Shown one piece after another: positions 7,437 through 34,201 of a DNA stretch of 64,000 bases. The translations under genes were made by a program, and so were the position numbers. The notes below the pieces were generated by a model. That model had not been told where the DNA came from and made no database searches. It saw nothing but the letters and a program-made list of their open reading frames with translations. This DNA comes from Andalucia godoyi And28 (lineage: Eukaryota; Protista; Jakobida), in NCBI GenBank assembly GCA_009859145.1, contig VRVR01000040.1, positions 35,211-99,210 of the forward strand, read 5' to 3'. How positions within the stretch are numbered: the stretch's first letter is position 1; each line of letters begins with the position of its first letter.

Positions 7437-8934
7437 TTAGGACACTGGCTCTTCTTCAGCCACGCTCAGCAAAGATCTCTGTTTCTTCGCTTCGTTGTTG
7501 AACTCCGCAATTTGCTGATCCGAAAAACTGAAACCGCGTTTGCGATTCCGAGCGGGTTTTTCGTCTTCCGGTGACGTTGGAGAAAACGGAGGCGGTGGCA
7601 ATGTCGCCAAAGGCGCGACATCGGTAAAAGGCCGCGTTGGTGTAGGGACACGAACGCCAGCCTTGGCTGCCTTGTCCGCGAGGTTCTTGGAGTCGGACGC
7701 CAGAATAGGATCAATAGGGATTGGAGACAGCGGCTGTTTGGAACGATGCGATCCTCCGTAGTGCGTTTGCTGGCTTTGAGCACTCGAGAGCATGCCGTCA
7801 CCGGCCGAGTGGGCAGAAGACATGAACGACGTATTCTGAGACGAGAACGAAGTGTTTGCGGAAGACGGAGCAGAGCCCGTGGATCCCGCTTCTATCGACG
7901 GGACAACAGGGGTTCCATTCATTGCCAAAGACGACTGCGGACCATTTCCACCGTGGATCGACATCCAACTGGGTGGTTCCATCATGCCAATCCGGGACAC
8001 AGATTTCTTATGCGGCCCGGTGGAGTTGGTGAATCCCCACTTCAGCAGATCATCCGGCGAACAGCTTGGGTTCATCGCAGATGCATATCCGCCCCCAAGA
8101 TAGCCCGAGTCTCCCATCAGATCGAGCACCATGGGAGTTCGGGGAGAAGGATGCATGCGCCTTTGGAGTCCGTGGATCGAAGCAGGGGAGAATGACTGCC
8201 GTCTGAATTGAGAATTTGAGAAGCCCGACGCAGTTTGCGCATTCACGCTGGAAGACATTACTGGCCCCAATGCTGCGGTTCCAGAACTGGCATTAGCAGC
8301 TGCTGCAGACGAGGAAGACGACGAGGCCGTGGCGTTCGCACTGTTGTTCGCTGCGTACGCGGAAGGAGCATACGGATCCGAGTCTGGAGAGAAGATGGCG
8401 GAGCGAAGATACGGATTTGCTGACTCGGAATCAGCATGGGAGCCGCGTACCGGAGTCGCAGCTACGAGGATGGATGGGGTTCCGAGGGGGAGAGGGGCAT
8501 GGAAAGCGCCATTTGGGCTGGCCGCAAACGAGTGATGGGCGGACGAGCTTCCGGAGACTAGTCCCATTGATTGGGCAAGCCCCGAAGAACCATGTGAGGA
8601 CTGCTCCTGTTTGCTGAAAAAGACGACGCCTCCGTGGCCGGATGGCGACTGTGCCTCTGGGAGCAAGCGCAGCGGAGAATGATCGGGGTGCTTGGAAATG
8701 TGTGGCGGTGTAGGCAAGAACGGCTTACCGAGCGAACTTGACAGCATGTGTGATGAGTTCCGTGACGAAGACCCCGGCATGCCCGCGCTTCCTGGAATCC
8801 CCATACTTGCCAGGGACCCAGAGGACCCAGAGGACTTCATCAGAGACCACGAGTATAGCTGCAGTTGCGACTGAGGCTGAGACTCGACATGCTGAAATTG
8901 CCCATGCTGCTGCTGATGGACCAGCTGCTGCTGC

Positions 8935-8965
<31 letters not shown>

Positions 8966-9656
8966 CTTGTTGCAGCTGTTGGTGCTGATGCTTCACGACT
9001 GTTCGCTCACCTGCAAGCAGCTCGAGTCGGACTCCGACCTCGGACAAGACCTCGTTGGACGGAGCGACTTCCTTCTTCTCCGCCTTTCTCTTCAACGTCG
9101 AGTTCCAATGATTCTTGATCGCATTATCGGTTCTTCCATCCAGAAGCTTCGAGATTGTCGACCACTTGTTTCCAATCACGATATGTGCTGCAACAATCGT
9201 CAGGTCCTCCAAGTCGGTCCACGGCTCTTTTCTGATATTCGTATCGAGGTGATTGTGGAATCTCTCTCTGCACTGCTTCCCAATGCGTCCATCAAGCTGA
9301 CGCGCAATCAGCGACCACTTCTTAGTCCCGTGCTTCTTCACCAGCTCCAGCAGCCTCATGTCCTCTTCCTGCGTCCAAGGACCCTTCACCGTGTTTGTGT
9401 TCATCACTTTTGACCATCGATGCCGACACTGAACCGCCGTCCGTCCCTTCAAACACTCTGAAATCCGCTTCCAGTTCTTCCCTCCAAAATCCGACACCGC
9501 AGATTTAAGCAGCTCATCCTCCGCCTCCGTCCAGCGCCCCCGAACTCCCTCATCATCTGAACACCCTTCGTCGCTCGACCCGTCGTCATCCGATTCGCGC
9601 TCTCCAACCACCCCACAGTCCCCGATCAACGTCGGAAGTGGTGCTTCATGAGACAT
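7437..9656 (-). CDS. R1R2R3 (3R)-MYB transcription factor, c-Myb/B-Myb-like
   Basis: Three MYB repeats with regularly spaced Trp: [10 protein letters not shown]..., KGPWTQEED...[22 protein letters not shown]...[18 protein letters not shown]. Probable start MSHEAP at 9656. Confidence 0.93.
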
Positions 9657-9764
9657 TTCCTTCTTCTTCTTCTTCTTCTTCTGATACAATGTTGTTACAA
9701 TTATCAATGATAGTACTGAAGAAATTTGGTGTACAGCCGAACCAAAAAACTTGAACAACTACAA

Positions 9765-9819
9765 CTACTACAACAAGAGTAATAATAATAACAATAACAA
9801 TAACAATAACAATAACAAC

Positions 9820-9853
<34 letters not shown>
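9765..9853. repeat. (AAC/AAT)n trinucleotide microsatellite upstream of MYB
   Basis: Direct inspection. Confidence 0.9.
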
Positions 9854-9855
<2 letters not shown>

Positions 9856-10369
9856 GAAGGAAGAATTAATATTTTTATTAATAAAAAAACAGAGAGAAAC
9901 AAAACAGAGGAAATGCTAAAACGAAAGAAAAGGAGCGTTTCTATCGGAACGTTGCGATTTCCTAAAGGGAAAGAACACGATCGATGGAGGGTCCAATTAG
10001 TGCATGTGCTAGGGTACGAGCAGGCAGGATCGTTGAACTAGTGCTTACACACTGGACGAGTGCGAGTCGCGCGCTTTCAAAAACTCATAACGACATTCGC
10101 AAACTGGCGGGATTTTTCACCTTGGGCGTGTTTTGTTTATGCTCTTCTTTTATTGTTTACAACAGGCAGAATGGAAGGTGGTTTTTTTTGTTTTTTGCAG
10201 TCCTCAAACTCGAGAGAAACTCAAGCGAGATCGCTCTTAGATCAAAAATGCACGAAAGAGACCAAAACACACGCAGAGAAAAACAACAAGGAAAACGCAA
10301 GTGTACACCAACACAAGGAGAAAGAAGAAGAAGAAGAAGAAGAAGAAGAAGAAGAAGAAGAAACGCGAG

Positions 10370-11122
10370 ATGAGTGCGGTTAATGAAGACTTTGCGAAGC
10401 TCAATGTCGCGGCTCTTCGGATACGATGCCGTGAAAGTGGGCTGAGCACTGGTGGCAAAAAGCAAGAATTGATCGATCGTCTCGTTTCGTTGCATCGAGC
10501 ACAGTTGTCTGCAAAGGCCGCTGACGACCGGGTGTCTACCAACTCGAATGACGACGGTATTTCAGATTCTGATTCTGATTCTGATTCTGGCTCAGCTCGC
10601 AACAGCAGCAGCAGCAGCAGCAGCGGTGGCGACGATGTCGATGAAAGAGAAGAAGCACAGGGAGAGAAAGGTTGGTCAAGCTTCAAGCCGTCCGCTCGGA
10701 TTGACTCGATTGCTTATCTGGACAGGCAGTCCGTGACACCAGCGGTGCATGCGCTAGTCGAGCAGGAGCTCTCACGACGCCCACCGCACATCCACTCAAC
10801 TGAGATTCCTGAGCCCGTGCTCCTGTCCACCTTGACGCCGCGGCAATGGAGCGAAAAAGCAAGAATCACCTTTGAGATCATGCGCAAATCACCACGACGC
10901 ATCGGCTTCTCCTCCTCCTCAATGGCCGTAGAGCAGTGGAAACGTGAGGCCACCGAGTATCTCAAGGCTTTGGAGAAGCACGAAAGCCAGGTGCTGGGTC
11001 GCATCCGCAACGAACAGGCGGAAATCAATGCCATCAACCAAACTAGAATGGCCCTTGCCAAACATGTACAAACATACATCTTCAATCACCTCCATCGTCC
11101 CGGGCCTCGCAGCCCTCCGTAA
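10370..11122 (+). CDS. SAP-domain protein with C-terminal coiled coil
   Basis: N-terminal FAKLNVAALRIRCRESGLSTGGKKQELIDRL fits the SAP motif; ATG at 10370 follows a (GAA)n tract. Confidence 0.8.
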   Translation: MSAVNEDFAKLNVAALRIRCRESGLSTGGKKQELIDRLVSLHRAQLSAKAADDRVSTNSNDDGISDSDSDSDSGSARNSSSSSSSGGDDVDEREEAQGEKGWSSFKPSARIDSIAYLDRQSVTPAVHALVEQELSRRPPHIHSTEIPEPVLLSTLTPRQWSEKARITFEIMRKSPRRIGFSSSSMAVEQWKREATEYLKALEKHESQVLGRIRNEQAEINAINQTRMALAKHVQTYIFNHLHRPGPRSPP

Positions 11123-11465
11123 TCGAAAATGACCCAAATGGAAAACAAAGAGGAAAAACGCCCAGGGGATTTTACTGACTGTAAATAATAATAATAATAA
11201 TAATAATAATAATTCCATGTCGACGGCTGTCAACCTGTTTATTCACTTGAATCGGAGGGTTCTTGACTTGACCCGAGGCTGCTGCTTGTGTCGCTTCAGT
11301 ATTTGTCATTGCTTTGATTTTCTTCGTTCTTTGCTAATTTCTTACATATATTTTAATTTTTACTGTTGTCTTGTGTTTGGGTATTCCATCTCTCCTTTTT
11401 ATTATTATTATTATTATTAGTAGTAGTAGTATTGTTATTGCTTTCTTGAGGAAAAGAAGGTTGGC

Positions 11466-11468
<3 letters not shown>

Positions 11469-11500
<32 letters not shown>

Positions 11501-12379: not shown

Positions 12380-13405
12380 CTACCACGCCTTCTTGGGCTT
12401 CGTGCTGGAAGCGGGCTTTGTCACTGCGTTGGATCTGCCTTGGTCAGCGGACTCCGGAAGCTCTTCAGCATCGCTCGCCTTCTTGCTGTTCCTGTTGTCG
12501 TCGTCACCATCACCATCACCCCCATCGTCATCGTCGTCGTCGTCGTCGCCGCAGCTAGAATTGACGTCCTCAGACAAAGATGCATTCTTCGTGGAGCCGA
12601 ATGACTTCAGGAGCTTCTGAGAGTCGGACAGCGCGGTGGAGTTTTGCTGCAGCATCGAGGCCAGGACTTCCGTGTCAAAGTGCGCAAACATCTTGCAAAG
12701 ACTTGCGGACAGCGACGCTCGGGCGTTGGCTAGCATGTTCTGCGACTTGGACTCGATCTGATCCCGCTCCGTTACAAGCTGCACATTGCGATCTGCAACT
12801 GTGGATGCAGTTTCAAACACTGCGTCTCTTTCAGCTCGTGTCGACACTCGTTGCGACATGAAGGCGCGGGTCGCGGTCCACATCTCCTTGAAGATGCCCG
12901 TTCCATACTTCCCAAACAGCAAGTCCACCTGGCCTTCGAGAGTCGCAAACGATGAGCTCCACGCTGCATCAACGCGGCCATCCAGATCGGCCTCCAGATT
13001 TCGGATCTCCACGTGCTGCACCGCAAAGTCATCCATCTTCACGAGAACAATCGTGCGATCCGACTCATAGAAACTGGATATTTTGTGAAGCGCGTCCTGA
13101 AACAAACAGAATGCATCCCGCATCTCAACGAGCGGTTGCAGAACGGTACGCGCCACCGATTCGCACAGCGTGGGGAACGCCTTTTCAACCACCGCCATGC
13201 GCGGACCATAGGCTTCCACAGTCCGATTGTTGGCGTCGAGCACGGCCCGGACCTTTTCGAGATCCTCACGCTTCAGTCTCCATTGCCTGATGAGCTCTTC
13301 GTATTCTTGAAACGTCGTTCGAAACGCCTCTCTCTTCTTCTTGCGCTCTTTTTCCTTTTCTTTCGCATCTGCACTGCTGGCAGGCTTTGAGACCGATGAC
13401 TCTGG

Positions 13406-13437
<32 letters not shown>

Positions 13438-14851
13438 TGCTGGTAGTGGTGGTGGTGGTCGAGAATGTACTAGTGACAGGAGGAAGCCCAATCAGCTCAG
13501 CATCATCGTCGTTCTCCAGGGCTTGGCTCGACGATTTGACGTACTGATCAAGCTTCAGCAAAAGGACTCTCGCCTGCGCCGATGCCGTGGACTTGTACTC
13601 TGCATACACAGCCCTGGCCTTGTCAAAGGCCGCAATATCTGCGCCATGCTGCTCTTTCGCAAGAGCCCCTTGGTTCCATTCGTGGAACTTGTCTGTGATG
13701 GACAGCAGCGACTGCACTGCAGCCTGGAAAATCGAACTATCGGTTCCAAACGGAGTGCTTTTTCCAGACTTTGAGCTCTTCAGCAGTTCCTGCGAACGAG
13801 CAAACACCGGTCTGTACAATGCCAGATCATCAAATCGCGAGAACGAACGCACGGATTCAAGACACGATACCCAGTCGCTGAGCATTTGAACAGAGTCTTT
13901 GAGATCTGGAATCGATCCCAACAACTTGCTCTCCTTCTTGAGGGCAATCCGGAGCTTCTCTACGTTTGTAGAGATCATTCTTCGGCCCGTCAGCACCTGC
14001 TCGACACGATCGGAAAACTCTCGGAGCATTTCGGCTCGTTCCTTCAGGGCTTTTTCAAACACCATGAACGACTCTTCGGTGCGGACCTTGTTAGACATTG
14101 CTTCGCACGTGCCGGAAAACTCCGAGAGGATCGGCATGTTTCTCTGGATCGACCACTTTTGCAGCGACTTTGCAACAGCTGATCGCTGGTCAAAATATGC
14201 TGCCAAAGACTGCTGCAGTGCAGTAACGGTCTCGACGAACTGCGAGGTTTCGCTCTCGAGGGACTTGCGAATTCCGGCATTCCATTCATCGAGCGAAGAC
14301 TTAGTACCTAACTGGGAGACGCCTGCTTTGGAGTCATTCGGAAACGAAGAGCCTCCGCTGGACTGTGGCGAACTGGTCCCGATCGTGGTGGCCAGCTTCG
14401 CCATGAACTGTGCATCAGCAATGCTGTTAAACGTCCGGCAGAGCTCCTGATCGCCGAGCAGGACGTCGTGCAACCCAGCATTGAGGTGCGACGACTTTTC
14501 AATCATCAGCAGCCGATACTGCACCTGCAGCGCATCTTTGTGTGTCGGATGTTTGCACGTCTTCCTAGCAAGCTTGATGACTTCGTCCACACGCTGCATA
14601 TATTTGGAAACGTGGTGCTGGAACTTCTGCAGAACATCTCGTCGGTTCGCAACCAGCCTCTTCACATTTGATTGAGCTTCGGTGCTGCATACCTTGAGAA
14701 GGACGTTATGAACACCACTCCATAGATTCGCAGACGTCTTTGCATCGCTCAGAATCCGCTGCAGCTCCTTCTTGGATGCCTTTTGAGATTCCCATATCGC
14801 TTTCGGATCCGTGTTTTCTTCACTGTGCACCTTGGATTCTGAACAGCCCAT
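12380..14851 (-). CDS. Predicted N-myristoylated/palmitoylated all-helical coiled-coil protein, 823 aa
   Basis: N-terminus MGCSESK (Gly2, Cys3, Ser6); long amphipathic helices; acidic low-complexity C-terminus. Confidence 0.75.
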
Positions 14852-15379: not shown

Positions 15380-16102
15380 ATGTATTTTCGACGAAGGAAT
15401 TTCTTCTATTTGCGAATTTCGAGGAGCCTGTGTCTTGCTGTGATTCTTCATATTGCAGATGGTGGAAATGGCGAATGGTTTACGAAGGATCATTTTGATG
15501 CTTTGCTTTCGATGATTAAGGAGTTTTTGCCGCTGAAGCTCTCTGAAACGCTGAAAGGCGAGATTTCTGTCCGCAAGATCAATGAAAAGGCCAGGTTTGA
15601 GCTGTTTCGTGGAGACGGCATGCAGTTTTCATACCAGTTTCGGATAATGAGACCGCGGCATTCGGTTCTGATCAGTCCACAAACCTTCGCGCATCCATTA
15701 ACTGCTGCGGAGAACATCACCGTCAGGACTAGCAACAACGATGATGATGATGGTGGTGGTGGTGCTCTTCACCAAGCACATGCAGAGCAGCCCACTATGA
15801 ACAACGAAGGAACAGACGATGTCTTTACGAATGGCGCGTCGTGGAGAGTGGTTCGAAGTGCTGGATATGCAATCACTGTCCGCGTTCGACAGTATCCTGC
15901 ACCTAATGGCAGCACCAACATCCGTGACAATCCCAGTTCAGCCGCTCCTTCTTCAGCTGCATCTTTCCCATCAACTGTATCATCAGGCCCGTCGGCATCC
16001 GCACACCCATCCGCACACCCACACTCGCAGATCCCGGTGAATCAGATGCTTGTTCCAACATCTTCTGGTCGTGGACTGCGAAAAAGAAGAATTGAAAGCT
16101 GA
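15380..16102 (+). CDS. Hypothetical protein, weakly SLX4IP-like N-terminal domain
   Basis: YLRISRSLCLAVILHIADGGNGEWFTKDHFDALLSMIKE...GMQFSYQF...RHSVL...ITVRVRQYP resembles the SLX4IP-type pattern from memory. The start may be altered by an upstream exon. Confidence 0.5.
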   Translation: MYFRRRNFFYLRISRSLCLAVILHIADGGNGEWFTKDHFDALLSMIKEFLPLKLSETLKGEISVRKINEKARFELFRGDGMQFSYQFRIMRPRHSVLISPQTFAHPLTAAENITVRTSNNDDDDGGGGALHQAHAEQPTMNNEGTDDVFTNGASWRVVRSAGYAITVRVRQYPAPNGSTNIRDNPSSAAPSSAASFPSTVSSGPSASAHPSAHPHSQIPVNQMLVPTSSGRGLRKRRIES

Positions 16103-16134
16103 GGCCTTCGTTTGTTCCCGACGTCTTGTACATG

Positions 16135-16335
16135 GACACCCGGCAGTACCGGGGCCTTTTCTTTAAAAAAATATCAGTAATAGTAATGAGCGAATGTGCA
16201 GATGGTCACTTCAGGGAGTTCACTTCAATCTCCCTCTTTTTGTTTGACTTAGGGCACACCCATGTAAATCAATGCAGGGATTCCAAGAACGGGAGGCGTG
16301 AAATGTCCGTTCAATCTTCATGAGTGCCCTACGCG
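16135..16335 (-). ncRNA. Candidate omegaRNA scaffold/guide region of the Fanzor1-like element
   Basis: Stem 16319-16331 pairs with 16250-16264 (13 bp with a 2-nt bulge) and encloses GAACGG/CCGTTC (16287-16292/16307-16312). Further stems: AGGGAG/CTCCCT (16213-16218/16230-16235) and CCCGG-N5-CCGGG (16139-16153). The region overlaps the ORF stop codon, as omegaRNAs often do. Confidence 0.5.
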
Positions 16336-16644
16336 AGACTCCAGCTCGCTTGGACTGGGAATACCGCGTGGATTCCGACACAAGAGCCGCGGTCGCCTGA
16401 GCCAGCACTGACGAATGTTCATCGCGGCGTTGGCATCGCGGCCCACGCACCGGCGGTCAGATGGACAGTTCACTGTGGCGCAGTGTCTCAACCCCCGGGA
16501 CACGAAGCGCTCACGACGCAATACCGGATTCTCGGGCATCCGCATGAAAAAGGGTACCACCAGGTCGCGGGTAGCCAGACGGTCCAGCAGCTTGGCCGTC
16601 GCCTGCTGCTTCTTGACACGACCGCGGAATCGGCGGCTGTTATG
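16318..16644 (-). pseudogene. Fanzor1-like C-terminal fragment (bridge-helix region fused to partial Zn finger and RuvC-III)
   Basis: One frame reads RRFRGRVKKQQATAKLLDRLATRDLVV-PFF...RGLRHCATVNCPSDRRCVGRDANAAMNIRQCW. RDxNAAxNI is the TnpB/Fanzor RuvC-III motif. RuvC-I (DPG) and RuvC-II (E) motifs are not visible. Confidence 0.8.
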
Positions 16645-16794
16645 TCACCTAAAATAATAATACCTATCTGATTTATTTTACGAACAAAAGAATAAAAGAA
16701 ACAAACCGTCGGTTACACACAAATAGCCAACACACACAAACGGACAAGTCCGTGTCGTTGTCGACATTTTTATCGACAACACTGCGACAGCTAC

Positions 16795-16972
16795 AACAGA
16801 ACGAATCCTTGAAATCGGGAAAGGGCAGGTCATTCTCCAACACAAGGGCGAGGTAGTGGTTTAGCAGGAGTGCACTGCGCCACGTGATGAACGGCGAATC
16901 GTTCACCCAGATCGGGAGGGTATCGTGCTGATCGGGATGGCGCAGCCGCTCTCGGAGCGCAGCTTTCACCAC
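16795..16972 (-). pseudogene. Fanzor1-like N-terminal fragment
   Basis: VVKAALRERLRHPDQHDTLPIWVNDSPFITWRSALLLNHYLALVLENDLPFPDFKDSF resembles the Fanzor1 N-terminus (V/T-VK-x-x-L ... R-x-SLLLN-x-YL ... P-x-PD). It is preceded by a possible acceptor (GGTGTAG|GTG). Confidence 0.62.
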
Positions 16973-17356
16973 CTACACCATCGGGTTCCGAAAATGTGCA
17001 AGTATGAAACTGACGGAACAGACAAACCGACAACGTGTGGCGAAGTGTGAGGAGGATGTGGTGCCAAATAAAAACGGTGAAATATCAAAATACGAACGCA
17101 GCAGTGTTTTATTCAATATTTTATTTGACACAACGAAGTCCAAGGTGAAACGAGAGAAACGGAAAGGGGAAAAGAAGAGCGGTTTAAGGAATTGCTGGAA
17201 TTTCTGAATTGAATTTTAGGGAAGCGCCCGTATTGTTCTTATTTATTTATTTTTAATTGTTTTACGATATCCAACACATGACAAGACAAACAGAAGAATG
17301 GATGGGACATGGGACATGGGGCACGGAACCATCGACTATTCTGAGAAAACGCGGGG

Positions 17357-18859
17357 TTATGCGTCCTTCGGTCCAAGCATATCTTCCGGACGGACCCATT
17401 TTTCAAAGTTCTCGGCGGTCACGAGGCCGAGTTCGAGGGCGGACTCGCGAAGAGTAATGCCCTTCTTGTGTGCATTCTTTGCAATCTTTGCTGCATTGTC
17501 ATACCCAATGTGCGGGTTGAGTGCAGTGACAAGCATGAGCGACTCGCGGACAATCTTCTTCAAGGTCTCCGTGTTTGCCTCGATTCCGTCGACGCAGTGA
17601 TCGACGAATGAGACAGAAGCATCTGCAATCAAACGAATCGATCGGAGGACATTCGACACCATGAGCGGCTTGAACACATTGAGCTCAAAGTGCCCCTGCG
17701 CTCCACCAATTGTAACAGCCACGTGGTTACCCATGACTTGTGCGCACACCATGGTCAATGCCTCGCACTGCGTTGGGTTGACCTTTCCAGGCATAATCGA
17801 CGAACCGGGCTCGTTCTCGGGCAGCGAAAGCTCTCCAAGTCCACAGCGCGGACCAGACCCCAAGAATCGAATGTCGTTTGCAATCTTGTTCAGCGAAACG
17901 GCAAGCACGTTCAATGCGCCCGAGAGTTCCACCATTGCATCATGTGCAGCTAGAGCTTCGAACTTGTTGGGAGCTGCCGTGAAAGAAAGTCCAGTCAACT
18001 TTGAAACCTCCGCCGCAACATACTCGTCGTACCCACGGTAGGTATTGAGTCCAGTTCCCACTGCCGTTCCTCCGATTGCAAGCTCGCAAACACGCGAAAT
18101 GCTCTGTTTCACTCGCAGAATCCCGTACGCAACTTGCTGTGCATACCCCGAGAACTCCTGCCCCAGGGTCATGGGAGTCGCGTCCTGTGTGTGCGTGCGG
18201 CCGATCTTGATGATGTCCACCCACAGTTTTGCCTTCGCGTCCAGCGCGGCCTGGAGCTTTTCCAGAGCGGGGAGAAGTGTCTGGGTCGTTTCAATTCCGA
18301 CTGCAATCGACATTGCGGTCGGGAAGGTGTCGTTGGAAGACTGCGATCGATTCACATGGTCGTTTGGATGCACAGGCTTCTTGGAACCCATCTGTCCGCC
18401 CATCATCTCAATTGCACGGTTCGAAATAACCTCATTGACATTCATGTTCGTCTGCGTACCCGAGCCCGTCTGCCAGATCTTCAACGGAAAATGCGAATCT
18501 AGTTTTCCAGAAATCACCTCATCGGCAGCCTTTTCAATCGCCGATGCAACCGCACCGTCCATTCCAAACTTTGCTGCATTCACTCGTGCACACGCCTTCT
18601 TGAGAGTTGCCATTGCATGAATCACCGGAATCGGCATCCGCTCCGAGTCTCCACCAATCGCAAAATGGTACAAAGAGCGTGCCGTCTGTGCGCCCCAGTA
18701 CTTATCTGCAGGTACTTGGATCTCGCCAAAGGAGTCTGTTTCAGCTCGAGAAGGACCATCCACTGTCGGCATTACATGGTGCGACGAAGACATGAGACGC
18801 AAAAGTGAACCTCGTGGAGACACAAACAAGCGCGAAACTCGAGATGCAGACACAAACAT
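17357..18859 (-). CDS. FH: Class II fumarate hydratase, mitochondrial
   Basis: [15 protein letters not shown] signature, [35 protein letters not shown]; Arg/Ser-rich presequence. Confidence 0.98.
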
Positions 18860-21509: not shown

Positions 21510-23417
21510 TCATAGACTCAAAATGGTGCCGTCATTGGACTGTGGAATCATGAGTACAAGAACACCCAATAAAATACCTCGAGAATCTCGGAGCCAAGAA
21601 ACAGATTGTGAGTACAGGATCTTGCGACCGTCTTTTCTGCGGAGCGGCGACGTGACTCCTGAAGCCTTGATGCGAGGATTGACATTCACTTCGTGGACAA
21701 GAGACAGGAACTCGTTGGTGTTTTGCTCATTCAAGTCCAACAGGTCCCAAATGAGAATGTCGTGCCCGTCGAAATCGCCCTTTGTGTACATTGACACCTC
21801 CACAAGTGGTCCATTTGCATGGTAGACGTGAGCTCTACAATCCAGAATGCAGCCTGGAAACGGAACCGAGTCAACGACCATCTTGCTTCGGTCAATCTGT
21901 TCGCGCAAGAAGGAGTCCTTTGCAATGAGCTCATCGTAAACAAAATGTGGAGTGCGAATGGCCTCCGGATGCGCCTTGTAGATGCTGTATTCTGCAGTTA
22001 GAAAGCGCTCTCTCCATTTCAAAAACGAAACCAGCACTTGCGGCGACAGTCTGTGCGCATTCCGTCGTAGAAATCGCGACATGGGCGAGGGTGAAATGAT
22101 GTTTTCATCCATCAGCGTCCGGAAAATTGCCTTCAGAGTCGCATCTGAGTCGGCAGACCCGGAGCCAGGAGCCCCAGCTCCACTGCTACTGATTCCCCCC
22201 AGACCACTCATTGAGCCAGATCCACAAGTCGCGGAGGAGCAGGACGATGCTGGATAGCCCACGTCAAACGAAAACGACGTATCCAGCGACAGCAAATCCA
22301 ACGGCTCAAATGAACTCCCTTCTCCCAGTCCTTGCCCTTGCCCTTGCCCTTGCCCTTGCCCTTGCCCTTGCCCTTGCCCTTGCCCTTGCCCTTGCCCTTG
22401 CCCTTGCCCTTGCCCCAGCCCAGAAACTGATCCAAAGCCCTGCTGCTGCTGGTGCTGCTGCTGGTGCTGAATGAATGACTGAAACTGTGCGGAAAAGGCG
22501 TCCGGAGTCAGTTGTGGAAGCGGCGAACTCACAGAAAACAAAATTGGAGAAGCGCATCTGTGAAGCTCTGCGACACTATTCCCACCAGTTGCTAATGACA
22601 ACGGAGGTGGAGACGATGATGACAATGACGCAGGTGGCAGTAACGACGACGATGCAAGTGAAACCGCTGATGCCGTCACATCAAGCTGTGATTTTGACCG
22701 CTCAATCCTCCGCGACTCCAACACAGCCATTGGGGTATATTTTCTCTGGTACTTCTTCGGCTTCTTCCGCGCAACATACACGCACTCCAAAGGAAACCCT
22801 CGCTCAACACATCGATCACAGGGCGTGTCTCCATTGCATCGCTTCTTTTGCATCCTGCAGAACGTACATGCCCGCGTAAGCCTTTTGATGCCTCCGCTGC
22901 CCGACTGCGCACCCACACCCGACTCTCTATCTTCTTCATCATCCTCCACCTCCTCATCCTCTTCATTCTCATTCTCATTTTCATTCTGTGGCCTTCTTCC
23001 ATTACGAGAGTCCATATTATGACTATAATGACCATGTGCATTCCAACTCTCCTCTGTGTTTCGACTCTGTGTAGGAGCAGTGCTGCTGTTGCTGCTGCTG
23101 CACCGAGTGTTGTTGCACCCCACGCTACCATTACTAATGCTACCAATGCTGCCGATGCTGCTGCTTACATTCTGGGAGTTGTGACGGATATGCTGGCAGC
23201 GAGGCCGTTTTCGCGGAGGCTGGAACGTCAGGCTCGAGGCCTGGGAAAGATTGGCAGGAGACGAAAGCGGAGACGGCGACAATGAAGACGGCACACAAGA
23301 ACTGGTTGTGGAAGACGTGCCGGTATGTGTGGACGCGGTCGAGAGAGCCAGCGGTAGAACAGGACCGCACGCAGCGACCGTAGTTGGAAATGAAGTCGAG
23401 ATGTGGCTCTGTAGCAT
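21510..23417 (-). CDS. Zn(II)2Cys6 transcription factor with C-terminal PAS-like domain (paralog 1)
   Basis: CTFCRMQKKRCNGDTPCDRCVERGFPLEC = CX2CX6CX5CX2CX8C. C-terminal PFPGCILDCRAHVYHANGPLVEVSMYT...LRRKDGRKI...WLRDSRG is PAS/PAC-like. Probable start MLQSH at 23417. Confidence 0.88.
   Translation of the reverse strand: MLQSHISTSFPTTVAACGPVLPLALSTASTHTGTSSTTSSCVPSSLSPSPLSSPANLSQASSLTFQPPRKRPRCQHIRHNSQNVSSSIGSIGSISNGSVGCNNTRCSSSNSSTAPTQSRNTEESWNAHGHYSHNMDSRNGRRPQNENENENEEDEEVEDDEEDRESGVGAQSGSGGIKRLTRACTFCRMQKKRCNGDTPCDRCVERGFPLECVYVARKKPKKYQRKYTPMAVLESRRIERSKSQLDVTASAVSLASSSLLPPASLSSSSPPPLSLATGGNSVAELHRCASPILFSVSSPLPQLTPDAFSAQFQSFIQHQQQHQQQQGFGSVSGLGQGQGQGQGQGQGQGQGQGQGQGQGQGQGLGEGSSFEPLDLLSLDTSFSFDVGYPASSCSSATCGSGSMSGLGGISSSGAGAPGSGSADSDATLKAIFRTLMDENIISPSPMSRFLRRNAHRLSPQVLVSFLKWRERFLTAEYSIYKAHPEAIRTPHFVYDELIAKDSFLREQIDRSKMVVDSVPFPGCILDCRAHVYHANGPLVEVSMYTKGDFDGHDILIWDLLDLNEQNTNEFLSLVHEVNVNPRIKASGVTSPLRRKDGRKILYSQSVSWLRDSRGILLGVLVLMIPQSNDGTILSL
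22330..22413. repeat. (CCTTGC)14 hexamer encoding poly-(Gly-Gln) in the transcription factor
   Basis: Direct inspection: 84 bp of perfect hexamer. Confidence 0.95.
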
Positions 23418-23974
23418 CCGTTGTTCCCAGTAAAATAAACAAGCCACACAGAAAAAGAAGAAAGAGACAGAGACAGAGAGGGAGGGGGACAGAGAGAGAG
23501 AGAGAGAGAGAGGAAAAAAAGATGTATATGAAGGAAAAAGAACCAAAACTTTGAGAAGGATAAAGAGGCCAAAAGAATGTCGCTGACTCGAAACTGAGAC
23601 GCAATAAACTGGCAAGACAAATACAGAAATCAGCATTGTCGTACACGGCAAACAGAGAGGAAAGCACTGAAACTCAAATTGGCAAATCAGCGGGCAATTT
23701 CAGAAATTGTCGTCGTCAGTGGTCGACACTCAACAGTGTTAATCATTTTTTTGGAATTTAAAAACGCCCGACTCAGAATTGCCGATAAAGGAGATGTTTT
23801 TCTTCTTTTTTACATTACGGCCGTTGGGATGAAAAGAATGGTGTTTTCTGCATGCAGGAAACAATAGGTGACAGGATTGGGCAAGTGCACGCAGACGGAG
23901 TATCTGCAAAGAAGCAAGCAAAGTGCGAGGGGGAAAAATAGAAAAACAAGATGGATCCACGGGGTTGTGCGAGA

Positions 23975-32188: not shown

Positions 32189-34201
32189 CTAGACCGTCAA
32201 ACGGGTATCTGTGGACGACGGGAGAGGAGTCATCAAGATCACGATCGCCAAAAAGGCCCCTTGCTTGTTACGTAGCCACCAGATAGCAGTGGAGTAAATA
32301 ACCTTCTTGCTGTCCTTTCTCCGTATGGGGCCCATCACAGCATTCCCACGGATGCGCGAATTCGACTTGGCATCGGAAACCATTGCAAGCAGATTTTTCA
32401 GGTTCTCTTCGTTCAACTCGAGAATGTCCCAGATCTGCAAGTCACCATCCTCGAGCTCCGTTCGGGTATAAATTGAAATCTCAATCAGTGCGCTGTTGGT
32501 GAAGAAGACGTCGCCAAAACAGCCAAGGATGCAGCCAGGGAACGGGTACATTTCCAAAAACGCCTTTGCTCGCTCAACTTGCTCATTAAGAGACGGATCC
32601 GACCGGACGATCGTATCAAACTTGGGGACAACAAAATTGCCGTCATTGTCCTGATCAACAGAACCTCCCAGATAGCCTGGTGTCTTTTTCCATTGTGCAG
32701 CACTTTGCAAAAACAGTTCCTTGACCTTCTCGTCCAGCCGACCTTCATTCCTCCGCACATAGTCGCACATAAACGAACTGTACTTGATCGTCCGCGTTTC
32801 CGGATATGGACGGCACTGATTGGACGACGAGACCATGAGCCGACTTGCACCGCGATCAATCGGCGGCCGTGTATCCGGTGATTTTTCTGATGACGCTGAA
32901 GAGCCCGACCTCGACTCGTAAATGAGATCCGAATTCGAATTGCCACTCCGGGAGCCGGAACATGCATGTGCACTATTTGTGCTCGAAGACTCTGACTCAG
33001 GCGTGTGTGCATTACGCAGTTCTTTCGCGGACCGACCGAAAGCGTCCTTGAGCCCCGGCCTTTTGCCTCGGCTTCCTTCTCGAGCTTGCTGCGCGTCGCT
33101 CTCAGTTTCATCGAGAACTTCGGCGAACTCTTCATGACTCTTCGACAAGGATGACAATGACGATGCAGCCAGATGATCTTGGAAAAGCGGTGTGAACGAG
33201 TGAATCAACGGAGAAAACTCGATTTGCGAAGTGAATGTACTTTCAACAGGCTTCTCCGATGATGATGATCCCGGAACAGCCAACGGAGTGAGAATATGCA
33301 ACGGTCTATTTGTGCCTAAGCTGCCGCTCCGGCTGGACGGCGGATTTGCAGAACTGTGCATGCTGGCCACCAGCGAGGAGCCAAGCGAGCTGTGACTGCT
33401 TGGATGGACAGCGCTGAATGGAGAAGTAGAAGTGCCCATGATCGAAGATGGAAAACAAAACGAAGACGGGACGACAGATGGAGTGGAAGGACCAGAAAAC
33501 AAAGGAGCCGGCGAACCCTGCTGCAGTTGTACACTCGTCGACGAGAACACAGAATTCCAGTTTGCGTTTGCGTTTGCGTTTGTCGTTGTTGCGGTCGTCG
33601 GGGTCGTAGTCGCAGTCGCAGTCGCAGTCGATGATGATGATGATGATGACGATGATGATGATGATGATGATGACGATAAGATGGTGGAGGAAACAAACTT
33701 GGAGCCATTCACAGATGAAAACGACGATGATGGAAATGCAGAAAACGGTGAAGAAGACGAAAAGACGTTTGGATGTCTAGAAGGTGGAGACTGATCGTTC
33801 CCCACCACCTCGGCGACATCGTCATCAGAATGTCCATGACAGACACGAGTTCGCTTCGGTTTTCGTCGCTCCACAAAGGAGCATTCATGTGGGACTCCGC
33901 GCTCGATGCATCGATTGCAAGGAAATTCTCCGTTGCATTTCTTTTTCTGCGATCGGCACTGAACACAAGCCTTTGGAAGTCTTCGTCGAGGAAATCCAGC
34001 CGCTGTGTGCGAAGCCGAAGACACGACTTGCTCGGAATTTGCGTATCGTAAGCTGGCGGCCGGAAGCGAGATGGGGTTCGCAAACCCTACAGTTTGCGGG
34101 CGCAGAAACTTGGAAGAATCGAGTGCAGCGGCAATAATCGGGATTTTTTGCATTTGCGAGTGCTGTTGACGCGATTGATGGATGCCATCTTGTAGCGACA
34201 T
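32189..34201 (-). CDS. Zn(II)2Cys6 transcription factor with C-terminal PAS-like domain (paralog 2)
   Basis: CVQCRSQKKKCNGEFPCNRCIERGVPHEC has the same Cys spacing as paralog 1; C-terminal PFPGCILGCFGDVFFTNSALIEISIYT...IRRKDSKKVIY...WLRNKQG aligns with paralog 1. Confidence 0.88.
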   Translation of the reverse strand: MSLQDGIHQSRQQHSQMQKIPIIAAALDSSKFLRPQTVGFANPISLPAASLRYANSEQVVSSASHTAAGFPRRRLPKACVQCRSQKKKCNGEFPCNRCIERGVPHECSFVERRKPKRTRVCHGHSDDDVAEVVGNDQSPPSRHPNVFSSSSPFSAFPSSSFSSVNGSKFVSSTILSSSSSSSSSSSSSSSSTATATATTTPTTATTTNANANANWNSVFSSTSVQLQQGSPAPLFSGPSTPSVVPSSFCFPSSIMGTSTSPFSAVHPSSHSSLGSSLVASMHSSANPPSSRSGSLGTNRPLHILTPLAVPGSSSSEKPVESTFTSQIEFSPLIHSFTPLFQDHLAASSLSSLSKSHEEFAEVLDETESDAQQAREGSRGKRPGLKDAFGRSAKELRNAHTPESESSSTNSAHACSGSRSGNSNSDLIYESRSGSSASSEKSPDTRPPIDRGASRLMVSSSNQCRPYPETRTIKYSSFMCDYVRRNEGRLDEKVKELFLQSAAQWKKTPGYLGGSVDQDNDGNFVVPKFDTIVRSDPSLNEQVERAKAFLEMYPFPGCILGCFGDVFFTNSALIEISIYTRTELEDGDLQIWDILELNEENLKNLLAMVSDAKSNSRIRGNAVMGPIRRKDSKKVIYSTAIWWLRNKQGAFLAIVILMTPLPSSTDTRLTV

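Follow-up and report, generated by a model that had tools for sequence, protein, structure and literature searches.

What remains in the short spacer beside a fumarase gene of Andalucia godoyi, and does it still do anything? This species is a free-living jakobid flagellate, and jakobids are a deep-branching lineage of Discoba. Fanzor1 proteins form a eukaryotic branch of the TnpB/Cas12 superfamily and are omegaRNA-guided RuvC DNA endonucleases. The nuclear genome of A. godoyi is intron-poor and compact, at ~20 Mb (genome paper). The window analyzed here is the whole 64-kb stretch (64,000 nucleotides) of contig VRVR01000040.1, in which a minus-strand region at 16135-16972 had been predicted to be an internally deleted Fanzor1-like element. 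The region occupies part of a 1.25-kb spacer into which a class II fumarase gene and the next ORF both point with their 3' ends; the genes around it are of ordinary host types (fumarase, Myb, RPN6, and Zn2Cys6 proteins). Our analysis indicates that 16314-16981 on the minus strand is very probably a dead pseudogene, the twice-deleted remnant of a Fanzor1-type gene. The predicted extent holds as far as position 16314, where DNA homology to a second copy ends, and the remaining 16135-16313 lies outside the relic. In the features given below, A3 is the profile and alignment of eight full-length relatives (578-687 aa), P0005 is the closest of the relatives, and L002 is the second A. godoyi copy, on contig VRVR01000063.1.

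16314-16981, minus strand: the relic, ~670 bp, its 5' boundary tentative
16981-16979, minus strand: possible original start ATG, followed by GTG and then by an in-frame TAG at 16975-16973
16972 to ~16778, minus strand: N-terminal fragment VVKAALRERL...WRSALLLNHYLALVLENDLPFPDFKDSF, A3 positions 17-83, P0005 residues 39-98
16777-16638, minus strand: AT-rich filler at the large deletion, without a match to family proteins or L002
16637-16557, minus strand: helical segment RRFRGRVKKQQATAKLLDRLATRD, which precedes the (I/V)IAYG strand in intact relatives
16563-16558, minus strand: deletion junction (a), at CTGGTG, with ~169 bp gone
between 16546 and 16545, minus strand: deletion junction (b), with 30 bp gone (RFHQHPKRVR)
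16544-16318, minus strand: C-terminal part, with the second zinc-finger half RGLRHCATVNCPSDRRC, VGRDANAAMNI, tail, and stop
16314-16317, minus strand: AGAT, the last 4 nt of homology to L002 and, putatively, where the repeated unit ends on the right
17357-18859, minus strand: class II fumarase ORF, 500 aa, an exact match to a gene on VRVR01000040.1 (assembly GCA_009859145.1)
15380-16102, plus strand: the other neighboring ORF, its 3' end facing the relic spacer
21510-23651, minus strand: Zn(2)-Cys(6) ORF (PF00172)
32189-34201, minus strand: Zn(2)-Cys(6) ORF (PF00172)

The last two are long ORFs that carry, in a jakobid, the "fungal" Zn(2)-Cys(6) binuclear cluster of PF00172 (E ~2e-7 each). About 1.5 kb from the relic, a minus-strand ORF of 823 aa (12380-14851) has no Pfam match; it contains runs of serine/threonine, and its C-terminal tail is acidic and rich in D.

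Both minus-strand translations on which the original prediction was built are present exactly as given there. The two raw fragments have no Pfam match; the N-terminal one found nothing in a word-indexed search of 5.8 billion proteins and is absent from all annotated A. godoyi proteins, and the close protein matches of the C-terminal one (its C-terminal part is 91.5% identical in amino acids to P0003 and P0026) are all A. godoyi proteins. Homology of the N-terminal fragment emerged only after P0003 had been run with HMMER, exhaustively, against 1.84 billion representative proteins, a search that gave the full-length relatives P0005 (43% identity, E 7e-24) and P0009-P0017, all of 578-687 aa. Against A3, hmmsearch matched the N-terminal fragment at E 3.6e-10 (positions 17-83, window 16975-16778) and the C-terminal fragment at E 2.5e-16 (positions 529-574), and hhalign gave probabilities of 96.5% (E 9e-10, columns 22-78) and 98.2%, respectively. 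The N-terminal fragment is 44% identical to P0005 over 59 aa (BLASTP, E 8e-7), and the C-terminal fragment likewise matches this same full-length relative; in tblastn, P0005 matched the 64-kb window at 16972-16799 (E 1.7e-6) and 16542-16372 (E 9.6e-12), and P0015 independently matched the N-terminal fragment (E 5.6e-6). The N termini of the relatives follow the pattern ...(V/I)(V/I)K(C/M)CL...(S/R)xSL(I/L)xN...LE...(L/I)P(D/N)..., which is that of the window (VVKAAL...WRSALLLNHYLALVLENDLPFPDF). The original prediction had staked itself on profile matches and related copies elsewhere in the genome, and both matches and paralogues were found.

By its sequence, the A. godoyi family is filed under Fanzor1. 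Searched against PDB, A3 gave a single match, to SpuFz1 of Spizellomyces punctatus (8gkh), at E 5.4e-24 over positions 222-571, which bears out the predicted Fanzor1-like identity; neither ApmFz2 nor TnpB was matched at E<=1, and P0005 alone matched only the Parasitella Fanzor1 (E 0.6). The Cas12f1-like TNB domain PF07282 was detected in seven of the eight A3 members (best E 9.6e-11); a composite A. godoyi sequence gave PF07282 at E 0.008 and NF040570 (guided_TnpB) at E 0.001, both below the curated cut-offs, and no PDB match in phmmer. A further alignment, A2 (MAFFT, deletion derivatives), was left out as a profile because it mis-aligned non-homologous segments.

The motifs point in the same direction. 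The Fanzor fingerprint pairs a RuvC-I DPG with an alternative glutamate that precedes the zinc finger by six residues, and Fanzor1 additionally has a characteristic TDG in its WED domain (Yoon et al. 2023, PMC10711439). The A. godoyi proteins P0001, P0003, P0004, and P0026 carry ...PQTAKTDGV...LVGIDPGRANILTAF...WYH... and GIDPGR(A/T)N, and DPGR is invariant in A3; TDG, read as KTDGV in P0003, P0004, and P0026, occurs in seven of the eight A3 members. The L002 copy carries ...RFIIAYGDTSFGPTG..., then a 1-nt frameshift, and then ...VEPIDEYCTTKKCC...RGLRHCATVNCPSDRRCVGRDANAAMNI...; its alternative glutamate lies in IDE-YCTTKK-C, six residues before the Cys, and the upstream strand FIIAYGD has no glutamate. 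The A3 equivalents are DEFRTxxxC and IAYG. For the first zinc-finger half, A3 members have CxxC, and L002 has KKCCAG, without the second Cys of this first pair. In the window, the segments with DPG and TDG and the equivalents of DEFRTxxxC and IAYG are deleted. Likeness of the family to SpuFz1 (PDB 8gkh), PpFz, and GtFz1 thus comprises the profile match, the length of the full-length relatives, and the order of the motifs, which run TDG, DPG, alternative glutamate, and RDxNAAxNI as in Fanzor1, although identity to SpuFz1 is only 13-15% in structural alignment. An AlphaFold2 model of P0005 from the eight-row alignment was poor (pLDDT 50, pTM 0.37); with this low-confidence model, Foldseek placed SpuFz, PpFz, and GtFz at the top over ~660-780 columns with a TM of only 0.3-0.45, and aligned Fanzor2, Cas12f, and TnpB over ~250-260 columns only, the RuvC core. 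As to the enlarged REC with its REC2 kinked helices, part of the Fanzor1 architecture, A3 positions 84-284 are covered by no A. godoyi copy. Fanzor2 and the IS607 TnpB proteins (ApmFz2, NlovFz2) have in common with the family the superfamily, the DPG and alternative-glutamate fingerprint, and the RuvC/zinc-finger core, but Fanzor2 proteins are shorter and TnpB-like, and TDG marks Fanzor1 (Yoon et al. 2023, PMC10711439).

How much of such a gene is left in the window? As predicted, the element is internally deleted with both ends kept, namely the N terminus and a C terminus with the second zinc-finger half and RuvC-III. Unlike Fanzor1 genes, the window copy, a pseudogene, retains ~65 N-terminal and ~100 C-terminal codons (~165 of ~600-690). 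It has no REC, WED, RuvC-I, or RuvC-II, and RDxNAAxNI is the only Fanzor fingerprint kept. The absence of RuvC-I had been foreseen, and GIDPGR has no match anywhere in the window. The ATG at 16981-16979 may possibly be the original start of the gene, which is plausible because the relative P0014 begins directly with MIKASL, and the TAG stop at 16975-16973 directly precedes the conserved VVKAAL motif. The N-terminal fragment ends in ...PFPDFKDSF. After it, a filler of ~140-160 bp, in which only two short hairpins were seen, replaces ~400 codons that comprise REC, WED with TDG, the RuvC-I DPG, and the helices after it. The filler contains a stop in the frame of the N-terminal fragment (16675-16673) and another in that of the C-terminal fragment (16647-16645), and the two fragments are out of frame by 1. 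Because of the stops and the frame change, the relic cannot make a nuclease. A GT...AG intron joining the fragments was considered and rejected; behind the one good acceptor, tttag|GTGACAT, the C-terminal frame is closed immediately by a TGA.

The frame difference and the unrelated DNA between the fragments would also fit two independent remnants that came to lie 140-160 bp apart by chance, and no second A. godoyi copy with an N-terminal part bears on their continuity, since the window copy is the only one seen with an N terminus. We regard this as extremely improbable. Both fragments lie on the same strand and are collinear, with N ahead of C; the 64 kb contain no other family match and no second copy; and both match full-length P0005. 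Filler DNA at deletion junctions is, moreover, common in transposon decay. The reading of a single deleted gene is accordingly retained below.

The C-terminal fragment (RRFRGRVKKQQATAKLLDRLATRD...RGLRHCATVNC...RDANAAMNI...stop, 16644 to 16318 on the minus strand) is itself composite. Its RRFRGRVKKQQATAKLLDRLATRD segment has protein matches to P0001, P0002, and P0004. The DNA lost at junction (a) carried the codons for the IIAYGD strand, for the alternative glutamate of RuvC-II (IDEY), and for the first half of the zinc finger; what had been taken for an "LVV strand" is this junction, where ...ATRDQ and DLVSPLF... have been fused to RD|LVVPFF. Only the window copy has junction (b). Beyond it follow the kept second half of the zinc finger and the RuvC-III motif RHCATVNCPSDRRCVGRDANAAMNI (~16494-16420, aligned to A3 positions 529-574), with the RuvC-III aspartate within VGRDANAAMNI, and a tail ...ELESRVGHS that ends at the TGA stop 16320-16318.

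The family is multi-copy in A. godoyi, and all six loci seen are deleted, truncated, or frameshifted, with annotated copies that are fragments of 131-287 aa. Comparison at the DNA level was made with one other copy, L002, in turn truncated at its 5' end and frameshifted; P0001, P0003, and P0004 are known as EukProt proteins only. In blastn, window 16637-16557 corresponds to L002 10221-10301 with 94% identity and window 16546-16314 to L002 10481-10713 with 91% identity. Between these, ~169 bp of L002 (10302-10480), which encode FIIAYGD...IDEYCTTKKCC, are missing from the window, and the predicted loss of RuvC-II is confirmed at the DNA level.

The surroundings of L002 hold several observations of their own. 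The relic ORF there (L002 10001-10516; KAF0852141.1, ANDGO_04702) is labelled "putative mitochondrial protein" in NCBI and UniRef, which is very likely a mis-annotation because its start is arginine-rich. The ORFs around this relic, at 8488-9435 (plus strand), 9706-10023 (minus strand), and 10795-11475 (minus strand), include two inverted adenylate/guanylate-cyclase-like ORFs that flank it (...FPEEVA.QLK...FTDIAGFT... and ...LFSDIADFT...) and an opposite-strand C3HC4 RING-finger ORF that adjoins it, and the 5' truncation point of the relic overlaps the start of the RING ORF. The family protein also contains an internal near-repeat, encoded at L002 10070-10245 (GRV-REILDELSAL and GRV-KKQQATVKLRDRLAT), and the two GRV codon blocks (GG(C/T)CGTGT) are the exact limits of the deletion in ANDGO_02339 and ANDGO_05534. 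The ANDGO identifiers had no match in the supplements of the genome paper.

Junction (a) gives some access to the history of these copies. In the window, P0001, and P0004 (ANDGO_02339, ANDGO_05534), RD(L/Q)V(V/A)PFF agrees in both length and register; it would therefore stem from one deleted progenitor that gave rise to copies at three loci or more. A different deletion, FTNHQ|GLRHC, is common to ANDGO_03127 and ANDGO_03149. The progenitor with junction (a) would already have been without RuvC-II when it was copied, and the window copy would afterwards have lost ~400 codons, gained the filler DNA, and lost a further 30 bp. For the extent and order of these deletions, the reconstruction draws on foreign relatives (22-43% identity) and the one DNA copy, L002, and the deleted form could have been copied by segmental duplication instead of transposition. 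A sister-copy deletion (GRV|KKQQ) lies at the short repeat GG(C/T)CGTGT and the window junction at C(A/T)GG, and deletions at such short repeats fit microhomology-mediated repair. DNA transposons whose gaps or breaks are repaired in an error-prone way typically show such microhomologies at the junctions.

Whether the copies are transposons is a separate matter. No convincing terminal inverted repeats (TIRs) were found in 16000-17400; a TIR search in locus L003 gave short or low-complexity pairs only, as in the window; and neither a target-site duplication nor, among the window ORFs scanned, a transposase was found. "Transposon" is an assumption by analogy for these reasons, and "autonomous", the term that had been used for presumed intact copies, is the wrong word for Fanzor copies because Fanzor is not a transposase. 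Missing inverted repeats (IRs) are compatible with Fanzor membership, as some bona fide Fanzor loci have none (Saito 2023, PMC10432273). In SpuFz1, 30-nt IRs are present, and ~80 nt with the omegaRNA lie between the stop and the 3' IR (Saito 2023, PMC10432273), whereas no IRs were found for the window copy and A. godoyi DNA homology stops 4 nt past the common TGA stop; after ...TGAAGAT, the flanks of the window and L002 diverge completely, a boundary that is provisional at n=2 copies. The intact ancestor may have worked like SpuFz1, which cleaves DNA that matches a guide RNA transcribed from the element's 3' end.

The 3' end raises the question of a remaining use. The 3' end of the ORF is kept in all copies seen; P0004 is without RuvC-III, yet its last ~24 codons are kept in another frame. 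In S. punctatus, partial Fz loci and the "ghost" Spu-1 are multi-copy, have a partial ORF or none, and keep terminal sequences (Saito et al. 2023, PMC10432273), and the six A. godoyi loci resemble them in being all partial and all with the 3' end. The relic might accordingly be a useful non-autonomous "ghost" element, whose right end and coding-embedded omegaRNA (with the scaffold in the last 70-230 nt of coding sequence and the flank beyond 16314 as guide) would guide an intact Fanzor1 in unassembled subtelomeres. Retention of the extreme 3' end, P0004 included, and the abrupt end of both the window copy and L002 4 nt past the stop agree with this, as do the known ORF-less omegaRNA loci of SpuFz1 and the omegaRNA/ORF overlap of GtFz1 (Saito 2023, PMC10432273); moreover, subtelomeric "transposon/viral-like" scaffolds were omitted from the A. 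godoyi assembly, according to the genome paper. However, folding of the last 233, 92, and 72 nt at the relic 3' end was no more stable than that of shuffled sequences (z 0.33, -0.59, and 0.34, all within +0.6 to -0.6), and alifold gave no compensatory changes in 71 predicted pairs, a comparison of n=2 DNA copies with little power. Any omegaRNA end kept in the relic is putative: the 3' terminal sequence is kept in all copies, but with no excess RNA stability and no covariation. The kept 3' end of the six copies could also reflect descent from few progenitors. The Spu-1 ghost loci are IR-bounded, ~550 nt long, and have an experimentally active 75-nt omegaRNA (PMC10432273), whereas neither IRs nor RNA evidence was found in A. 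godoyi.

The partner gene is the other difficulty. In contrast to the S. punctatus ghosts, the A. godoyi genome has no known intact partner gene. No intact A. godoyi Fanzor was found in the protein collections searched, and full-length matches among the 1.84 billion representatives reach 43% identity at best, none of them A. godoyi-like. The expectation of intact copies elsewhere in the genome is therefore left unsupported by what was seen, although such copies could exist, because the subtelomeric scaffolds were omitted from the assembly. Taken together, we judge it decidedly unlikely that an active Fanzor1 system persists here through hidden subtelomeric master copies and dispersed ghost guide-RNA loci that keep the last ~70 nt. 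If it did, an omegaRNA scaffold wholly inside former coding sequence would be an arrangement undescribed for Fanzor1. On the reading as a dead pseudogene remnant, the relic most likely does nothing today.

Where the gene came from can be asked independently. Fanzors are known from giant viruses, the relatives P0016 and P0012 lie on virus-like metagenome contigs, and the genome paper mentions "transposon/viral-like" subtelomeric sequences, all of which would suit an arrival with integrated giant-virus (Nucleocytoviricota) DNA that then decayed. This origin seems unlikely, though, as the relic has ordinary host genes for neighbors (fumarase, Myb, and RPN6) and no viral ones, it is only ~670 bp, the L002 copy is likewise among host-like genes, and the closest relative, P0005, adjoins a SPRY-domain gene and not viral hallmarks. 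It concerns the source only, and the identity of the relic as a Fanzor1-type remnant is unchanged by it.

Two of the relatives deserve a description for their own sake. P0016, on ENA ERZ25039481 contig_36938 (481 kb; L004 8001-17255), adjoins an intein-interrupted Rpb2 that is split into several ORFs and is also near a GIY-YIG/zf-CCHC ORF, a context that looks like a giant virus (Nucleocytoviricota) genome. P0012, on ENA ERZ28653421 scaffold_1834 (83.8 kb; L005 6393-9737), has TDG, DPG, and the alternative glutamate all present, and its contig of ~84 kb is gene-dense with short ORFan genes. P0012 lies 174 bp downstream of a same-strand serine recombinase of 477 aa (PF00239 Resolvase, E 1.3e-22, aa 224-368), an observation of adjacency only. 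No Fanzor1 was found in serine-recombinase (IS607) transposons by Yoon et al. 2023 (PMC10711439), and for this reason the pairing could be an intermediate.

Within the portions of the Fanzor survey papers considered here (main texts and supplements), neither Andalucia nor jakobids are mentioned, and Naegleria (Fanzor2; NlovFz2 of the discoban Naegleria lovaniensis) is the only Discoba lineage named. To that extent, the original prediction of an uncharacterised Fanzor1 family stands, with a family that is multi-copy in A. godoyi. The surveys probably overlooked it because every annotated copy is a fragment of 131-287 aa. Fanzor1-type genes are now placed in a jakobid, so that a known kind of element gains a lineage, seen in decayed copies only. 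As the relic is non-functional, its practical value is limited to an annotation correction and a data point on the distribution and decay of Fanzors. Beyond the relic, the search brought to light a little-studied Fanzor1 subfamily of 578-687 aa in environmental assemblies, some of it on giant-virus-like contigs, and for A. godoyi itself the relic family makes the unassembled subtelomeres worth a search.
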